NCBI RefSeq assembly: GCF_003918875.1
Contig: NW_025767346.1
Span: forward strand, 1,178,001-1,242,000
Length of the DNA: 64,000 bases
Direction: 5' to 3'
DNA from: Haliotis rubra
Taxonomy: Eukaryota
This document shows positions 1,106 to 61,796 of the stretch, piece by piece. Under the pieces are notes generated by a model that was not told the origin of the DNA, ran no database searches, and worked only from the letters and a program-made list of their open reading frames with translations. Within the stretch, counting starts at the first letter, position 1. Each line of letters starts with the position of its first letter. The position numbers and the translations under genes are program-made.

Positions 1106-1609
1106 AGGTTCTGGAAGGCGGAGGCTACATAGTAGGTACAGGCGGTGTAGAGAATTAGGCGGTGAAAGCGAAACATATACATGCATGTCCACAATGTAAC
1201 TGGTACAGGATGTTGTATATGGGAAGCGGTGTTGATGTTGTGGGCGATGAGGAAGTTGCTCCGTTGACGATGTAGACAGTCTGGCTGAAGGCGATGTAAG
1301 CGGTAAACGTCTCGGCTGTAGGCGTGTATTGACATCACCTAAACGACATCTGCTGGATAATGGCTACTCCTGGCTGTATGATAAATGGCACGCCAGAAGT
1401 CATTACCTTAACCCGTTCACATGCACCAACAACAGCGCCCCGTCACGACGCTCCGTAAGTAACCCACCCTGATAAGTAATACAATCTGTTATAATGAAAA
1501 AACACACAAAAAAAACAGAACAATTTCCGTCATTTTTGTCATTTGTTTGAGTTATGTTCAATTATCTTAAGGTTATGCGACACCAGATCGGTTCAGCTCT
1601 TTCTGTGAT

Positions 1610-1853
1610 TGAGTGAGTGAGTTTAGTTTTACGCCGCACTCAGCAATATTCCAGCTACATGGCGGCGGTCTGTAAATAATCGAGTCTGGACCAGACAATC
1701 CAGAGATCAACAGCATGAGCATCGATCTGCGCAAATGGGAACCGATCACATGTGTCAACCAAGTCAGCGAGCCTGACCACCCGATCCCGTTAGTCGCCTC
1801 TTGCGACAAGCATGGGTTACTGAAGGTTCATTCTAACCCGGACCTTCACGGGT
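1610..1853 (-). mobile_element. Family B retroposon, full length
   Basis: Near-identical to the copies at 30662 and 46369; head ACCCGTGAAGGTCCGGGTTAGAATGAACCTTC; (ACTC)n tail. Confidence 0.9.
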
Positions 1854-12162: not shown

Positions 12163-13144
12163 CCCGTGTAGGTCCGGGTTAGAATAAACCTTCCGTAACC
12201 CATGCTTTATCTTCCCCGTGAAGGTCCGGGTTAGAATGAACCTTCCGTAACCCATGCTTGTCTTCCCCATGAAGGTCCGGGTTAGAATGAACCTTCCGTA
12301 ACCCATGTTTTGTCTTCCCCGTGAAGGTCCGGGTTAGAATGAACCTTCCGTAACCCATGTTTTGTCTTCCCCGTGAAGGTCCGGGTTAGAATGAACCTTC
12401 CGTAACCCATGCTTGTCTTCCCCGTGAAGGTCCGGGTTAGAATGAACCTTCCGTAACCCATGTTTTGTCTTCCCCGTGAAGGTCCGGGTTAGAATGAACC
12501 TTCCGTAACCCATGCTTTATCTTCCCCGTGAAGGTCCGGGTTAGAATAAACCTTCCGTAACCCATGCTTTATCTTCCCCGTGAAGGTCCGGGTTAGAATG
12601 AACCTTCCGTAACCCATGCTTGTCTTCCCCGTGAAGGTCCGGGTTAGAATGAACCTTCCGTAACCTATGCTTTATCTTCCCCATGAAGGTCCGGGTTAGA
12701 ATGAACCTTCCGTAACCCATGCTTTGTCTTCCCCATGAAGGTCCGGGTTAGAATGAACCTTCCGTAACCCATGCTTTATCTTCCCCGTGAAGGTCCGGGT
12801 TAGAATAAACCTTCCGTAACCCATGCTTTATCTTCCCCGTGAAGGTCCGGGTTAGAATGAACCTTCCGTAACCCATGCTTTATCTTCCCCGTGAAGGTCC
12901 GGGTTAGAATAAACCTTCCGTAACCCATGCTTTATCTTCCCCGTGAAGGTCCGGGTTAGAATGAACCTTCCGTAACCCATGCTTGTCTTCCCCGTGAAGG
13001 TCCGGGTTAAAATGAACCTTCCGTAACCCATGTTTTGTCTTCCCCGTGAAGGTCCGGGTTAGAATGAACCTTCCGTAACCCATTCTTGTCTTACCCGTGA
13101 AGGTCCGGGTTAGAATGAACCTTCCGTAACCCATGCTTGTCTTC
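12163..13144 (+). repeat. About 19 tandem copies of a 51-52-bp unit equal to the 5' head of family B
   Basis: Unit CCCGTGAAGGTCCGGGTTAGAATGAACCTTCCGTAACCCATGCTT(T)(G/A)TCTTC; runs directly into a complete family B copy at 13145. Confidence 0.97.
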
Positions 13145-13388
13145 CCCGTTAAGGTCCGGGTTAGAATGAACCTTCAGTAACCTATGCTTGTCGTAAGAGG
13201 CGACTAACGGGATCGGGTGGTCAGACTCGCTGAATTGGTTGACACATGTCATCGGTTCCCACTTCCGCAGATCGATGCTCATGCTGTTGATCACTGAACT
13301 GTCTGGTCCAGACTCGATTATTTACAGACCGCGCCATATAGCTGGAATATTGCTGAGAGCGGCGTAAAACTAAACTCACTCCCTCACT
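13145..13388 (+). mobile_element. Family B retroposon, full length; shares one TSD with the upstream head array
   Basis: TSD CATTGAATCCCTTGCA at 12147-12162 and 13389-13404 encloses the array and the element. Confidence 0.95.
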
Positions 13389-14796: not shown

Positions 14797-15018
14797 ACCC
14801 GTGGATATCCGGGTTAGAATTGGTCTTCAGCATCCATGCTTGTCGTAAGAACGGGATCGGGTATTCAGGCTCGCTGACTTAGTTGACACATGTCATCGTA
14901 TCCCAATTGTGTAGATTTTTGCTCAGGCTGTAGATCACTGGATTGTCTGGTGCTGACTCGATTATTTGCTGCCCGACGAATATAACTGGAATATTGACGT
15001 TAAACAACAAACAAACAA
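14797..15018 (+). mobile_element. Family B retroposon, diverged, (AAAC)n tail variant
   Basis: ACCCGTGGATATCCGGGTTAGAATTGGTCTTCAGC head, body and tail. Confidence 0.85.
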
Positions 15019-21923: not shown

Positions 21924-22092
21924 AGGGACGGTGGGGTAGCCTAGTGGTTAAAGCGTTGGCTCGTCACGCCGAAGACCCGGGTTCGAATCCCCACATCAGT
22001 ACAACGTGTGAAGCCCATTTCTGGTGTCCCCCGCCGTGATGTTGCTGGAATATTGCTAAAGAGCGGCGTAAAACCAAACTCAGTCAGTCAGT
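21924..22092 (+). mobile_element. Family A SINE, young
   Basis: Full consensus; TSD TCTT(C/A)CTCGTTA. Confidence 0.92.
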
Positions 22093-22364
22093 CTTACTCG
22101 TTAAGCTACCATTGTGAAAACAAAAATCAGTTACAAACGGCCTTAAAATATAGAACGTCATTGCAGAGGAAAACCCAGCCATGACTATCTTCAGATAGAA
22201 ATTCCTCTTGATGTAAAGGGAAAATGGTGGTGAAAATATATGTACTCTGAATAATTGAGAATCAGTAATGACACCAGGTGAAGCTCAGATCACTCACTCA
22301 TCCACTGCTTTTCTTTGAACGTCGCATCATTTCGACAGCATTAATTAATCTTCTTCCTGTCTAT

Positions 22365-22582
22365 CCCGTGAAGATACCCTTTAGAATTGGTCTTCAGCAA
22401 CCCATGCTAGTCGTAAGAGGCGAGTAACAGGATCGGGTGGTCAGGCTCGCCGACTTGGTTGATATATGTCATCGTATCCCAACTGCGTATATCAGTGGAT
22501 TGTCTGGTCCAGACTCGATTATTTACAGACTGACGTTAATAGCTGGTATTGCTGATTGCGGCGTTTAACAACAAACCAACAA
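22365..22582 (+). mobile_element. Family B retroposon
   Basis: Starts CCCGTGAAGAT; TSD CTTC(C/G)TGTCTAT at 22353-22364 and 22583-22594. Confidence 0.88.
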
Positions 22583-29272: not shown

Positions 29273-29520
29273 ACCCGTGAAGATCCAGGTTAGAATTGAT
29301 CTTCAGTAACACATGCTTGTCGTCAAAGGCGACTGACGGGATCGGGTGGTCAGTCTCGCTGAGTGATTTGACACATTTCATCGTACCCCAATTGCGTAAA
29401 TCGATGCCCATGCTGTTGATCACTGGATTGTCTTGCCCATACTCGATTATTTACAGACGACCGCCACATAGCTGGAATATTGCTGAGGGTGGCGTAAAAC
29501 TAAACTCACTCACTCACTCA
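29273..29520 (+). mobile_element. Family B retroposon, full length
   Basis: ACCCGTGAAGATCCAGGTTAGAATTGATCTTCAG head through (ACTC)n tail. Confidence 0.9.
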
Positions 29521-30245: not shown

Positions 30246-30660
30246 CCTCAAATGCAAATTTCAGCACGACTAGATATATCTTTGGAATCGAACCCGGAAT
30301 GGTAAGCAGGTGTCTGATACGTGAAACGGGTTTAAACGTTATTGACCATGCATAGTGAATTCGCGTGCCTGCGTGTGCGTGCATTTGTGCGTCTATGCGT
30401 TTGTGCGTACGTGTGTTTGTATGGTAGCCGGACTAATGTAGGTTTCAATAATTATATCAGCCATGAATTACCATATCTCATTGACACCTACGAGGAGACC
30501 AGAACCAGTTTCGCCTTCACAATGCCGACCACAGGCGTGGTAACAATAAGTTCCGCCTTTTAACGTCTTCCCGTATGGCAATGATCGATTATGTACACGA
30601 GAAACGAGCGCACTGCCATTTGAACAGCTGCCCTTAATCAAAAGGGTACATTGGCAATAC

Positions 30661-30913
30661 ACCCGTGAAGGTCCGGGTTAGAATATTGATCTTCAGCAAC
30701 CCATGCTTGTCGTAAGAGGCGACAAACGGGATAGGGTGGTCAGGATCGCTGACTTGGTTGACACATGTCATCGGTTCCCAATTGCGCAGATCGATGCTCA
30801 TGCTGTTGATCACTGGATTGTCTGGTCCAGACTCGATTATTTACAGACCGCCGCCATATAGCTGGAATATTGCTGAGTGCGGCGTACAACTAAACTCACT
30901 CACTCACTCACTC
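30661..30913 (+). mobile_element. Family B retroposon, full length, near consensus
   Basis: TSD ACATTGGCA(A/T)TA at 30648-30659 and 30914-30925. Confidence 0.93.
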
Positions 30914-31567
30914 ACATTGGCATTATTCCTCTAGTGTTTTTCTATATTTAATAGGCCGTGTCAACATTTCTTCTCCCACAGTTGCCCATCTATTTTAGTA
31001 TCTGATGTTGACATACTTTACCCTCGGTGATATTGTCACTGTAGTCCCGTATTGTGCAACCGACACAACTGTCAAACACTCGCATGTATATCGCAATCGT
31101 TATGAAGATTAACTATTCATGAGTTACGCTTTCTCAATTCACCTTCTATGACATTTTATCAATAGATTATCTCCATGCAAACAATATATTGATTATATTA
31201 GGTTAGCAGGTGCGCTATATAGATAGATAACGGCAGTTCAGGAAAATCTGTATCATTAATCCATAAATCTGAAAAGGTGTGCCAAGAAACTCGATACTGT
31301 TAGCTTTTCCGTAGTCGGTTCATACTGGCTGTTTAGCGTCTCACTCGATAATATTTAACTGATGTGACAGCCATGTTTCATCACATTTGAACATCGTAAA
31401 CCAGTGATTGGTATCATGAGCATACCACAATCAACAAGAAAACGAGGCTGAGCCTATCCATGTTGTCGCCTCTTAATCAATAGCAGTTTGCTGAGGAGCT
31501 ATATGCTTGCCCGGATCTCCATGGTTTTCTTGGCTAAACATAAACAGGTTCTGTTTTAGCTACAGCG

Positions 31568-34815: not shown

Positions 34816-35848
34816 AAGAGCTTCCCCACAGGAGGTGGGAGACTATTGTCGTCAGGGGAACCCCGACCCAAGCCCCATCCCCGCCACTTTCCTCTGATCA
34901 GGGTACCGTTATTTCCCTAACAACGAGGAGAAGCGATTATCTTGATGTCCATTCATCTCAGGTACACTCGCTCATTCCCCATTCATCGATAGGAACTATT
35001 TTTACTGAAAACGCAAATCAATTTGAACTAAGATAGAGCAAAAGATTGATTTCAATTTAAACAAACACACTCGTCATACATTTCCGCCAGAAATAAAACG
35101 GAATTTTTCATGTATGTGTACTGAGAATTCCTCTTAAATAGAAATAACGGTTGTTGTTATCATGGCGCTTCCTTGACAACAGTAAACACCAAAATCAATG
35201 ATATCAACGATCTCAATAAAACAAAGCTCAGTATCCATTCTTCGTCTCTATCCACTTCTTTTGTCTTGTATATTACGAATACAGGGAACGATATTGTGGT
35301 ACGGTGGCACAGTGGACAAGGCTGTGAGAGACAATCCGAGTTTAGATCACCACATAAGTACAATGCTTTATTTCAATGTCCGTAACACGTGTTATATTCG
35401 GGATTACACTTCCTCAGTAAAGTACAAATGCTAGTTTTATTGGGTTGAGTCTAATCTGGGATTCGAACCCATACCCCAAGAGTCAGGCACCAGATCACCT
35501 AATCCGTGTTCCCGCTGTGAAACACTGACATTCCGCTAAAACAGCTATGCATAATGGTTGTACTAATTTTTCTTTTCAAAATCAACGAAGCAGTCAACAA
35601 TATTCCAAAAATATACATACATTCAACAATATTCTAACCGTATGTCGTGGTCTGATAACAATCGAATCTACACTACAAAGTACAGTAATTGATACCATAA
35701 GCATCAATTTCTGTAACTGGGAGATAATAGCATGTGTCATCCAAGTCAGCGAACTTGACCAACCGATCGCGTTCGTCGGCTCTCGGACAAGTACAGGCTC
35801 TGACGGTTCTTCAAAACTGTGAAAAATCTTGACCGTGCCCTATTTCTA

Positions 35849-46167: not shown

Positions 46168-46368
46168 TCTTTGGTTTTATGTTTGTCCGCGTGGGGCACG
46201 GGAAGCCAAGTGAGTTATGCCCAGGTTTTTGAGTTCGAATCCCTTGGTGGTGGTGATAATATTTTGTTTACATTTGCAAAGTCTGCATCCTATCCATAGT
46301 CGGGTTCTCCAAAGAGGAAAACACTGAGACCTGTGTTATTTCGGGTTCTTCTCTCATATCATGCGGGA

Positions 46369-46612
46369 TCCGTGAAGGTCCGGGTTAGAATATTGATCTT
46401 CAGCAACCCATGCTTGTCGTAAGAGGCGACTAACGGGATCGGGTGGTCAGGCTCGCTGACTTGGTTGACACATGTCATCCGTTCCCAATTGCGCAGATCG
46501 ATGCTCATGCTGTTGATCACTGGATTGTCTGTTCCAGACTCGATTATTTACAGACCGTCACCATAGAGCTGGAATATGGCTGAGGGTGGCGTAAAACTAA
46601 ACTCACTCACTC
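46369..46612 (+). mobile_element. Family B retroposon, full length
   Basis: Consensus match; TSD-like CTCATA(T/G)CATG(C/T)GG on both sides. Confidence 0.92.
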
Positions 46613-46664
46613 ACTCATAGCATGTGGACACCTCGTGATATTACTGTAATACTTTTAAAATAGC

Positions 46665-47594: not shown

Positions 47595-48068
47595 GAGTGA
47601 GTGAGTGAGTATGGTTTTACGTCGTTTTTAGCAATATTCCAGCAATATCACGGCGGGGGTACACCACAAAATGGGCTTCACACATTGTACCCATGTGGGG
47701 AATCGAACCCGGGTCTTCGGCGCGACGAGCGGACGCTTTAACCATTGGGCTAACCCATCGCCCCTGATGTGGAGGACACAGAGCGAGTGAAGGGTAGGGT
47801 GTTGGGAGTGGTTGAGCGTCGTATGGACTGGGGTAATACATCATTACAGCATTGTAGCGTGTACAATGACCAAAACCTCGAAATGTTACTGTGGCGGTGG
47901 GGTAGCCTAGTGGTTAAAGCGTTCGCTCGTCACGCCAAAGACCCGGATTCGATTCCCACATGGGTACAATGTGTGAAGCCCATTTCTGGTGTCTCCCGCC
48001 GTGATATTGCTCGAATATTGCCAAAAGCGGCGTAAAACTAAACTCACTCACTCACTCAGTCACTCACT
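47595..48068. mobile_element. Head-to-head pair of family A SINEs (47595-47764 -, 47893-48068 +)
   Basis: Both match the consensus. Confidence 0.9.
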
Positions 48069-51477: not shown

Positions 51478-52215
51478 GCCACCCGATCCCGTTAGTCGTC
51501 CTACAACAAGTATGGGTTGTTGAAGATCAGGTATAATACGGATCTTCAGGGTGACACTGCTCTCTGGTTTCTACATAATGGGGATGTCCATACCTGCGTC
51601 ACCCGTGCCTTTGTTCGTATCGCGAGTTAATACGACGGGATATAACTGAGATACTCGTCTAAGCGGACTGAACCCAACTCACTGACTCACTCACACACAC
51701 ACTCACTCACTGACTCACCCACACACTCACTCACTCACTCACTCACTCACTTACCCACCCACCCACTCACTCACTCACTCACTGTAGATACCCTGTGAAG
51801 ATCCAGTGCAAATTGATCTTCAACAGCTCATGCTTTATCATGAGGCAACTGACAGGTGGTCAGCCTCGCTGACATGGTTCATACAGATCAACCTATCCGA
51901 CAGTCTGTATGACTCGAAAATGTCCCCATGAATTGCTAAATATATATTTAGAAAGGTAGTTGATAAATATTACGAGGCAAGATGTTCATGAATAACCTAT
52001 GCCCAAACACCTTTTCATCTATTAGAAATTGTCATGCATCACAGAAAAAGTTGTTTAACAAACTATCATCATTATAAACATGATTGTTGACAGTTGGCGC
52101 GGATCCACGCTCATGATGTCAATCACTGGATTGTCTTGTCCAGACTCGATTATTTACAGACCGCCGCCATATAGGTTGTATCTACAAACAAACAAACAAA
52201 CAAACAAACAAACAA
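51478..52215. mobile_element. Family B fragments (head 51478-51552 -; split copy 51791-51890 and 52095-52215 +) and an (ACTC)n tract at 51677-51783
   Basis: Diverged consensus matches. Confidence 0.7.
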
Positions 52216-61307: not shown

Positions 61308-61796
61308 GTAGAGCGATGAACGTTTGTGAATCGTTTCCCTGGACCTTACAGTCCAGTGTTTGACACCATGAGCATCAAATCACTGCGTGATGATTCGCAG
61401 TTGATTAGTTTGACCACCAGTCAATGCAGTCGACTATATCGACCAATGTAGTCTTCCGCTATGAACCAATTCCAATCCGGAATTCCCGAGAGAATCTCCA
61501 GTAGCAGAACATAATCCCCATTTAGGTGAAAATTAAATTATACATGTGACTGACCGAGTATAGTTTTACGCCGTTTTAAGCCATTCACCAGGATTTCAAT
61601 CATGATGTTTAGTCATCTTTAAATTGGGCAACCGAAGTACGTGAGTTAGATTAGTTTAACTAGTTTAAACATTGTTTTAAAGCAACACCACGGCATATCA
61701 GATTGTTGGTGGGTTTGTTTAACGCCGGTTAAACAGTATTTTACATATCCTAAGTTAAATGGGCGAGAAAAACTTCATGTGAGGCAGGTCTCAATT

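Follow-up and report, generated by a model that had tools for sequence, protein, structure and literature searches.

Short interspersed elements (SINEs) are normally defined by an RNA polymerase III (Pol III) head; SINEs of the LP type break this rule, and we know of no demonstration of how such elements obtain a defined 5' end. As outlined in the description by Matetovici et al. (2016; PMC4758252), the LP-SINE, described in Haliotis and hosted also by Littorina, oysters and scallops, is a type with a head derived from a long interspersed element (LINE). The head, of ~68-70 bp, is common with the first bases of the 5' untranslated regions (UTRs) of Nimb-clade LINEs, the tails are common with those of tRNA SINEs, and a promoter function was suggested for the head (PMC4758252). 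Here, we analyze an abalone SINE, denoted family B, in a 64,000-nucleotide (nt) stretch of the Haliotis rubra genome (contig NW_025767346.1, positions 1,178,001 to 1,242,000; hereafter the window, in whose own numbering coordinates are given), with the focus on positions 30661-30735, for which an earlier note, made from the letters of the window alone, had proposed a structured RNA. Sequence comparisons indicate that family B originated from a LINE 5' terminus, that its first ~75 nt represent a conserved folded RNA module of related LINEs, and that the element is mobilized through a LINE-type 3' tail.

Family B is probably of the LP-SINE type, the match being to the published description and not to the Hdi/Hmi_LP, Nimb-17_LMi, I-3_DR or RTE-9_CPB sequences. 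It lacks a tRNA, 5S or 7SL head, its first ~70 nt are homologous to the 5' ends of RNase H-bearing LINEs, its target-site duplications (TSDs) are variable, and its 3' tandem-repeat tail is common with tRNA-derived SINEs; as far as the published outline goes, the ACTAAA-type hexamer near the 3' end and the abalone host are further likenesses. In that outline, the head is a sequence block and a putative promoter, whereas here it is a covarying RNA fold, and the abalone partner LINE carries a predicted hepatitis delta virus (HDV)-like ribozyme before a truncated copy of the head. The clade label I/Nimb-like that we use for the LINEs comes from their domains and from the description, not from a phylogeny.

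LINE 5' ends are known ribozyme sites (PMC3414825, PMC3185411, PMC8501958), and three described systems are close to the one analyzed here. Pr77 of the trypanosomatid L1Tc/ingi LINEs and of the non-autonomous NARTc, RIME and SIDER is likewise a 5'-terminal module, of ~77 nt, common to LINEs and their short parasites; it is active at both the DNA and the RNA level, and the activity is lost in some copies (PMC3383444, PMC4035085). Pr77 is an HDV-like ribozyme with proven cleavage and a promoter, whereas the abalone module, known from sequence only, has no HDV core; the two also belong to different host phyla and LINE clades. The R2 SIDEs (short internally deleted elements) of Drosophila (PMC3414825) resemble family B in that they are non-autonomous, join a LINE 5' RNA module to a LINE 3' end and are LINE-mobilized, but they are rare and site-specific and possess an active HDV-like ribozyme, whereas family B is genome-wide, hugely abundant and devoid of a ribozyme core. 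With the HDV-like ribozymes of LINEs in general (R2, RTE and L1Tc; RF00094 and RF02682), the head has in common the location at the RNA 5' end and the strand order (C-run, 5' strand of P2, G-run, linker, 3' strand of P2), which corresponds to P1/P2; it differs in lacking P3/L3, P1.1, P4 and the catalytic C, and in having no Rfam match. MetaSINEs (MESC) carry the 66-bp Meta central domain after a tRNA head, and the Haliotis MESC SINE, as its published outline has it, ends in (CACCT)n and contains a (CA)n microsatellite, unlike family B. The P4 segment of family B, for which the earlier note had considered a Meta origin, belongs to the LINE-derived module.

A folded module at SINE and LINE 5' ends

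The copy under study is a 255-bp element on the plus strand (30661-30915) in which BLAST and the family consensus delineate a head, a body, a LINE-type 3' tail and an (ACTC)n repeat; positions 30661-30735 are its 5' end. The minimum free energy fold of this segment is exactly the four-helix cloverleaf drawn in the earlier note (-22.8 kcal/mol, z = -2.08). Reading along the plus strand, a 5' C-run (C1, ACCCGU; 30661-30666), present in all LINE homologues, is followed by P2 (stem S2, GAAGGUC/GAUCUUC, seven pairs; 30667-30694), the loop of which holds a G-run (G1, CGGGU) and a conserved UAGAAU linker. Next come the P3 hairpin (AGCA/UGCU; 30695-30707) with a C-rich loop (C2, ACCCA), the P4 hairpin (GUCGU AAGAG GCGAC; 30708-30724), which is the most conserved segment of the module, and a 3' G-run (G2, ACGGGAU; 30726-30732), the cloverleaf partner of C1.

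The C-runs and G-runs admit more than one arrangement. C1 has two potential partners, G1 (pseudoknot stem S1) and G2 (P1); with G1 as the partner, ACCCG/CGGGU, interlaced with P2, gives the first 34 nt of the SINE an H-type pseudoknot topology. The earlier note had described a kissing loop between P2 and P3; the complementarity of the P2-loop GGGU to the P3-loop ACCC does exist, but GGGU pairs equally with the 5' ACCC. The runs can be joined either as C1:G1 with C2:G2 or, as in that note, as C1:G2 with C2:G1, both being possible in nearly every lineage, and all four C-run/G-run combinations are complementary in most lineages; RNAalifold prefers C2:G2. For the two C-runs and two G-runs, the combination of P1 with the "kissing loop" is thus one of two alternatives, both equally possible.

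A protein search with the second open reading frame (ORF2) of the abalone partner LINE yielded hundreds of relatives at 48-62% identity, of which eleven loci were taken. A covariance model built from abalone SINE heads only (R1) matched a ~75-nt module upstream of ORF1, on the sense strand, in RNase H-bearing I/Nimb-like LINEs whose ORF2 is 48-54% identical to that of the abalone LINE. The matches scored 40.1 bits (E about 1e-8) in loci L062 and L070, 29.1 bits in L065, and 20 and 16 bits in two elements of L063; a second model, built from SINE and LINE versions (R2), added two copies in L066 and a copy in L067, at 35-37 bits. The P4 hairpin, its loop and the following UAA are identical in the abalone SINE and the LINEs of L062 and L065. 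Comparison of independent LINE copies (L062 against L070, and the plus-strand and minus-strand copies of L066 against that of L067) showed flanks that are unrelated up to the first bases of the module, which identifies the module as the LINE 5' terminus in these two lineages; the LINEs of both have no ribozyme ahead of it. The earlier note had named longer copies with a LINE head upstream of ACCCGTG as evidence that would count against it. Such a head was indeed found, in an unexpected form: the SINE head itself is the LINE head.

Covariation was measured in an alignment of SINE heads and LINE homologues (A7, 24 rows). In this alignment, which was fitted to the structure of the model and represents few independent lineages (about seven), the covariation score is 0.310, compared with 0.130 +/- 0.014 in shuffles; 57 cells are changed on both sides, where 21.4 +/- 4.0 are expected; and the paired cells make up 84.9%, where shuffles give 72.5% and slid partners 39-47%. 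None of the 500 shuffles reached the values of A7. The pseudoknot stems were parsed by script, and two MAFFT alignments (A3 and A4) were out of register for pair counting. Across the about seven lineages, P2 keeps seven (sometimes six) pairs, with five positions changed on both sides. The closing pair of P3 varies by lineage (CG 8, AU 7, UA 3 in A7). Most lineages have GUCG/CGAC as the P4 stem; L066 and L067 have GGGG/CCCC or GAGG/CCUC and retain the UAAGA loop. P1 is a weak helix, 74.5% paired across the lineages of A7. P2, with compensatory changes, and P4 are also recovered by RNAalifold from an unfitted MAFFT alignment. With the LINE homologues added, P2, P3 and P4 covary strongly, and these pair-preserving changes point to selection on the RNA rather than on linear DNA motifs.

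The abalone copies alone, by contrast, show no excess of covariation over shuffles (0.120 against a shuffled mean of 0.121 in 21 copies), the exception among them being a single P2 pair that runs through A-U, G.U and G-C. In a table of 59 abalone heads, the changes are largely scattered single ones, and the copy-level variation looks like neutral decay after insertion; from the abalone copies alone, the fold would stay only a plausible prediction. The covariation that the earlier note had ascribed to the fold is weak in the abalone copies, which match shuffles, and becomes strong only once the LINE homologues from other assemblies join. Its broader claim, that the first ~72 nt constitute a structured RNA, is upheld by the covariation of P2, P3 and P4 across lineages.

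Several further features were noticed at the LINE loci. At L062:9031-9330 (ENA ERZ26168041) lies a second SINE with this LINE-type head, from another organism; it is ~300 nt long, is flanked by a 15-bp TSD (CTCCGTTAATGGTAC) and ends in (CACT)n, and more copies or fragments lie at L062:8569, L062:11163 and L070:68-153 (minus strand). On the 3' side of the module, LINEs from different assemblies have two more conserved blocks in common, GTTTGCCGTGGG(T/C)TGCGAC and GAGGACGGGATCCTGGTGGTTGAG (L037:2232-2300, L062:1988-2080, L065:2340-2420 and L066:2158-2240). Positions 66-85 of family B resemble the second of these (GAGGACGGGATCCTGGTGGTTGAG), which suggests that the SINE has lost about 60 nt internally. 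At L070:7899-8492 (ERZ26168041), a called gene with a SCAN domain adjoins the LINE, which would be odd if the assembly were that of a mollusc.

The abalone partner LINE and its HDV-like 5' end

For the identification of the partner LINE, 20 reverse-transcriptase loci of the abalone genome were examined. Nine LINE copies carry at the 3' end a ~57-nt stretch that is about 80% identical to the SINE tail (nhmmer E about 1e-6), and these tail-bearing copies define a LINE of 6.2 kb with APE, RT (reverse transcriptase) and RNase H domains and a 5' end common to all copies. The 5' end matches the HDV models weakly (RF02682 at 25.4 bits, E 0.0098, below the gathering score; RF00094 also weakly). The predicted ribozyme is compact and includes a 7-bp P1 with a G.U at the base, the L3 sequence UCCUCGU, a GCUAAG junction and almost no P4, and its P2 occurs in two independent compensatory variants, GAAAGGC/GCCUUUC and GAAGAGC/GCUCUUC. 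The HDV-like start is located at L037:2136-2194 (G000:C2702) and in 11 copies in L005, L038-L049 and L053. Directly 3' of it lies an H-type pseudoknot in which a 7-bp C/G stem is interlaced with GUGGACC/GGUCCAC. This pseudoknot half of the module is intact in 12 of the 12 abalone LINE copies, and the P3/P4 half is lost; R2 places the module homologue at LINE positions 64-136, after the ribozyme, at 17-26 bits. Judged by these matches, the abalone LINE appears to have an HDV-like ribozyme in front of a truncated module, and its copies begin at G1 of the ribozyme, not at the module.

By sequence-only comparison, with nhmmer or strict local alignment, the SINE head showed no or at best a marginal match to the 5' UTR of the partner LINE. 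Between consensuses of the SINE and of a 199-nt LINE 5' UTR stretch, a colinear alignment that allows long deletions scores 22 for the head against the first 199 nt of the LINE; controls gave about 7 +/- 3, and 22 was reached by none of 864 LINE-internal windows and 6000 shuffles. The first 40 nt of the SINE resemble both the P1/P2 strands of the ribozyme and the second pseudoknot.

According to one alternative, the head is a dead remnant of the HDV-like ribozyme of the partner LINE, which kept P1/P2, lost P3/L3 and the catalytic C by deletion, and is functionless. SINE positions 1-14 (window 30661-30674) and LINE positions 4-17 of the L042/L048 subfamily have 13 of 14 bases in common, the P2 of the SINE is that of the ribozyme but for one compensatory pair, the ribozyme is where R1 has its best match in the abalone LINE 5' UTR (6.8 bits), and only one of 2000 shuffles scores as high against the ribozyme as head positions 1-40. 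The same 40 nt, however, fit the second module at least equally (0 of 2000 shuffles), and it is after the ribozyme, at 64-136, that R2 sets the homologue. Furthermore, the ribozyme has no counterpart of P3 and P4, and LINEs of other assemblies have the complete module and no ribozyme at the 5' end. We consider the remnant explanation very improbable. With regard to the descent of the two structures, the ribozyme may have grown from a duplicated module, or the module from the ribozyme.

Two observations on individual LINE copies belong here. The 5' strands of ribozyme P1/P2 in L048 and L042 (ACCCGTGAAGAGCC) are also similar to the first bases of the module as found in foreign LINEs. On the minus strand of L005 (G000:C2711), at about 1680-1780, a LINE 5' end comprising ribozyme and pseudoknot is fused to family B position ~183, the junction being either that of a LINE inserted into a SINE or that of a chimera.

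Ends, tail and copies of family B

Family B is a SINE of roughly 250 bp (250-nt consensus of 24 young copies) with a fixed 5' start, ACCCGTGAAG. BLAST with the 30661-30915 copy finds about 25 more copies or fragments in the window, many of them 5'-truncated. In the window, the start (A)CCCGTGAAG is common to at least 12 full-length heads whose upstream flanks are unrelated, in agreement with the single start point reported in the earlier note, and the 9-mer at the head start occurs 36 times in the window compared with 8.7 expected. TSDs, which that note had also described, were found around several window copies, with lengths of 11-16 bp. For the copy under study, the upstream TSD ACATTGGCAATA (30648-30659) stops 1 nt short of the head and is matched, over 12 bp with one mismatch, by ACATTGGCATTA downstream (30914-30925). 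In 19 young genomic copies bearing TSDs, the TSD abuts A1 in 9 and lies 1-2 nt away in 9 more; among these 19, an additional 5' G such as is known from capped L1 RNAs does not recur.

As stated in the earlier note, family B has no Pol III A or B box, in our scan at up to two mismatches; family A, a tRNA-derived SINE in the same window, has both and served as the positive control. A tRNA-derived head was rejected on these grounds and on the negative results of ARAGORN and the Rfam tRNA model. In a weaker version of this idea, the head would have been acquired from a family A-like SINE as a tRNA-derived Pol III head and have degenerated, GGGTTAGAAT being a B-box relic, unless the resemblance is due to chance. 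Its basis is a 19-nt stretch that resembles the T-arm region of family A at 15 of 19 bases (chance estimate about 0.01-0.02). The relic, however, has three B-box mismatches, one of them at the invariant C, and no A box goes with it; moreover, GGGTTAGAAT is the G-run of the module plus the UAGAAU linker, which are conserved in LINEs that have no tRNA part. The LINE homologues of the head thus already contradict this explanation, to which we give hardly any credence.

The 3' end of family B is an (ACTC)n tail, directly preceded by an ACTAAA hexamer that resembles a poly(A) signal variant. BLAST within the window detects the last ~65 nt of family B also in family A, and these ~65 nt with the (ACTC)n repeat are common to family A, family B and the 3' end of the partner LINE; in the copy under study, this tail occupies 30848-30915 on the plus strand. 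This arrangement indicates mobilization of family B through its LINE-type 3' tail, and the characterization in the earlier note of a tRNA-less, LINE-mobilized element with a precise 5' end has been borne out.

Other full-length copies in the window include one at 46368-46617 (plus strand), which is 95% identical, one at 1605-1853 (minus strand), from a subfamily with the G-C variant in P2, and one at 29273-29520 (plus strand), from an older subfamily with the A-U variant. At 12163-13189 (plus strand), 19.9 tandem units of 52 nt, 95% alike and covering head positions of about 2-50, form an array that leads into a full family B copy, with one 16-bp TSD enclosing both; repeated template jumps at the structured 5' end are one possible origin of the array, tandem amplification at a later time another. 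Older subfamilies at 22364-22564 and 14797-14996 have a (CAAA)n-type tail (…TTAAACAACAAAC…) in place of (ACTC)n, which hints at a past switch of tail or of partner LINE. Old diverged relatives lie, all on the minus strand, at 31451-31526, 61416-61491, 35761-35818 and 51481-51553; a mid-body block, GATGCTCATG...TGATCACTGG, is still discernible in such relatives and may be a conserved central domain, and the 61416 copy has a P4 variant, GUCGA/UCGAC. Family A is represented in the window at 21930-21998 and by about 25 tail matches (e.g., 47861-48063); its A box is TAGCCTAGTGG and its B box GGGTTCGATTCC.

Beyond the window, a covariance model of the head gives ~6e5 candidates in the 1.38-Gb assembly, by a rough first-look count. 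In public runs searched as Logan contigs, whose type is uncertain, contig depth over family B declines towards the 5' end, a pattern that both 5' truncation and the tail in common with family A would produce. A DNA pattern scan of metagenomes yielded only two more copies of the family B SINE and one chance match, and two such scans of viral sequences gave nothing or chance phage matches.

Possible roles of the module

Comparison of the head with known RNA families gave negative results. A permissive cmscan of the SINE head and the LINE module (351 nt and 301 nt) returned no Rfam family, ribozyme or other, at E up to 10, the covariance models of hammerhead, twister, twister-sister, hatchet, pistol, hairpin and hovlinc included; in a scan of the whole window at gathering thresholds, the only hit was a tRNA, that of family A. 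The statement in the earlier note that the fold fits no known ribozyme agrees with these scans. An HDV-like identity of the head was rejected because threading onto the HDV fold fails. Of the nested double pseudoknot of HDV (P1, P1.1, P2, P3/L3 and P4), the head has only P1/P2-like stems, with nothing between the 5' strand of P2 and G1, where P3/L3 would stand. As for the catalytic C of J4/2, a conserved C is absent from the linker UAGAAU(AUU) in every subfamily and every LINE homologue.

The module could nevertheless be a new self-cleaving ribozyme that cuts at its own 5' edge and so frees LINE and SINE RNAs from read-through transcripts, as the ribozymes known at LINE 5' ends (PMC3414825, PMC3185411, PMC8501958) would lead one to think. 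Such a ribozyme is consistent with the position of the module at the exact 5' terminus of SINEs and LINEs of several assemblies, with TSDs that abut it and with the lack of a recurrent cap-derived G. Ribozyme-like, too, is the pattern in which the helices covary while UAGAAU, UAAGAG and the C- and G-runs stay fixed, and the P3/P4 half was lost in the abalone LINE, with an HDV-like ribozyme upstream, as if it were redundant. Conversely, neither the SINE nor the LINE version resembles any Rfam ribozyme (HDV, hammerhead, twister, hatchet, pistol and others) at E up to 10, and with P3/L3 missing and the linker that leads to the 3' strand of P2 devoid of cytosine, the module cannot function as a ribozyme of the HDV type. 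Furthermore, all 12 abalone LINE copies have preserved the pseudoknot half, although in these the HDV-like ribozyme upstream of the truncated module is credited with the cleavage. The self-cleavage that the earlier note had offered as one option is not supported by the present results, and we regard it as decidedly unlikely.

The "promoter substitute" that the earlier note had offered as its other option coincides with the hypothesis published for the LP-SINE type, as far as that account is outlined (PMC4758252). Under this hypothesis, the head would mainly be an internal Pol II promoter at the DNA level, with transcription beginning at the first base of the head and the RNA fold being secondary. 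A promoter of this kind would account for the fixed 5' start, for a copy number of roughly 1e5-1e6 and for the lack of Pol III boxes; L1Tc offers a precedent, its 77 nt serving at once as promoter and as ribozyme (PMC3383444), and the ACTAAA before the tail repeat, with its likeness to a poly(A) signal variant, would suit a Pol II transcript. The pair-preserving changes in P2, P3 and P4, however, point to selection on RNA, the truncated module does not set the start in the abalone LINE, which begins at G1 of the ribozyme, and the lack of a recurrent extra 5' G is weak evidence in the same direction. A promoter acting at the DNA level accordingly strikes us as rather unlikely.

The explanation that we favor, and hold to be somewhat probable, is a putative RNA-level role of some kind at the 5' terminus, in which non-catalytic mechanisms are included. 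The preference stems from the selection on the RNA fold, the absence of a known SINE promoter type, and the HDV-like ribozyme and lost P3/P4 half of the abalone LINE. In the proposed scheme, the module would act on the RNA that carries it, defining and/or protecting the exact 5' end of the element; the head would let the SINE mimic the 5' end of a LINE RNA, and the LINE machinery would then copy the SINE via the common 3' tail. The partner LINE itself would make its 5' end with the HDV-like ribozyme on read-through transcripts.

Several of the results described above weigh against this explanation. Covariation among the abalone copies alone does not exceed that of shuffles, and alignment A7 was fitted to the structure of the model and includes few lineages. 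The head and the 5' UTR of the partner LINE are barely alignable by sequence-only methods, and family B as a whole is linked to the LP-SINEs through their description and not through their sequences. Finally, the presence of a truncated module downstream of a ribozyme fits a role other than end formation, or inertia.

A more specific proposal, to which we assign a low probability and call unlikely, is that the module represents a new class of RNA that makes 5' ends, whether by cleaving itself as a ribozyme or by a fold through which a host nuclease is directed or blocked. If true, such a class would be common to I/Nimb-like LINEs and their SINE parasites in the several lineages seen to date, and the module would be interchangeable in function with the HDV-like ribozyme, its replacement in the abalone LINE. 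As far as can be told from the 2016 paper in outline and from Rfam 15, the type of element is already known, and what is new is the covarying structure of the head across distant LINE lineages, the location of the module at the first base of the LINEs, and the HDV-like ribozyme before a truncated copy in one LINE.

The conserved covarying fold, its position at the first base of LINEs and its partial replacement by an HDV-like ribozyme in the abalone LINE turn the promoter suggestion of 2016 into a set of testable alternatives, namely, transcription initiation, self-cleavage, nuclease stalling and binding of a LINE protein. With possibly several hundred thousand copies in a 1.4-Gb genome, the module is also relevant to the annotation of abalone genomes and to the processing of transcripts that run through its copies.

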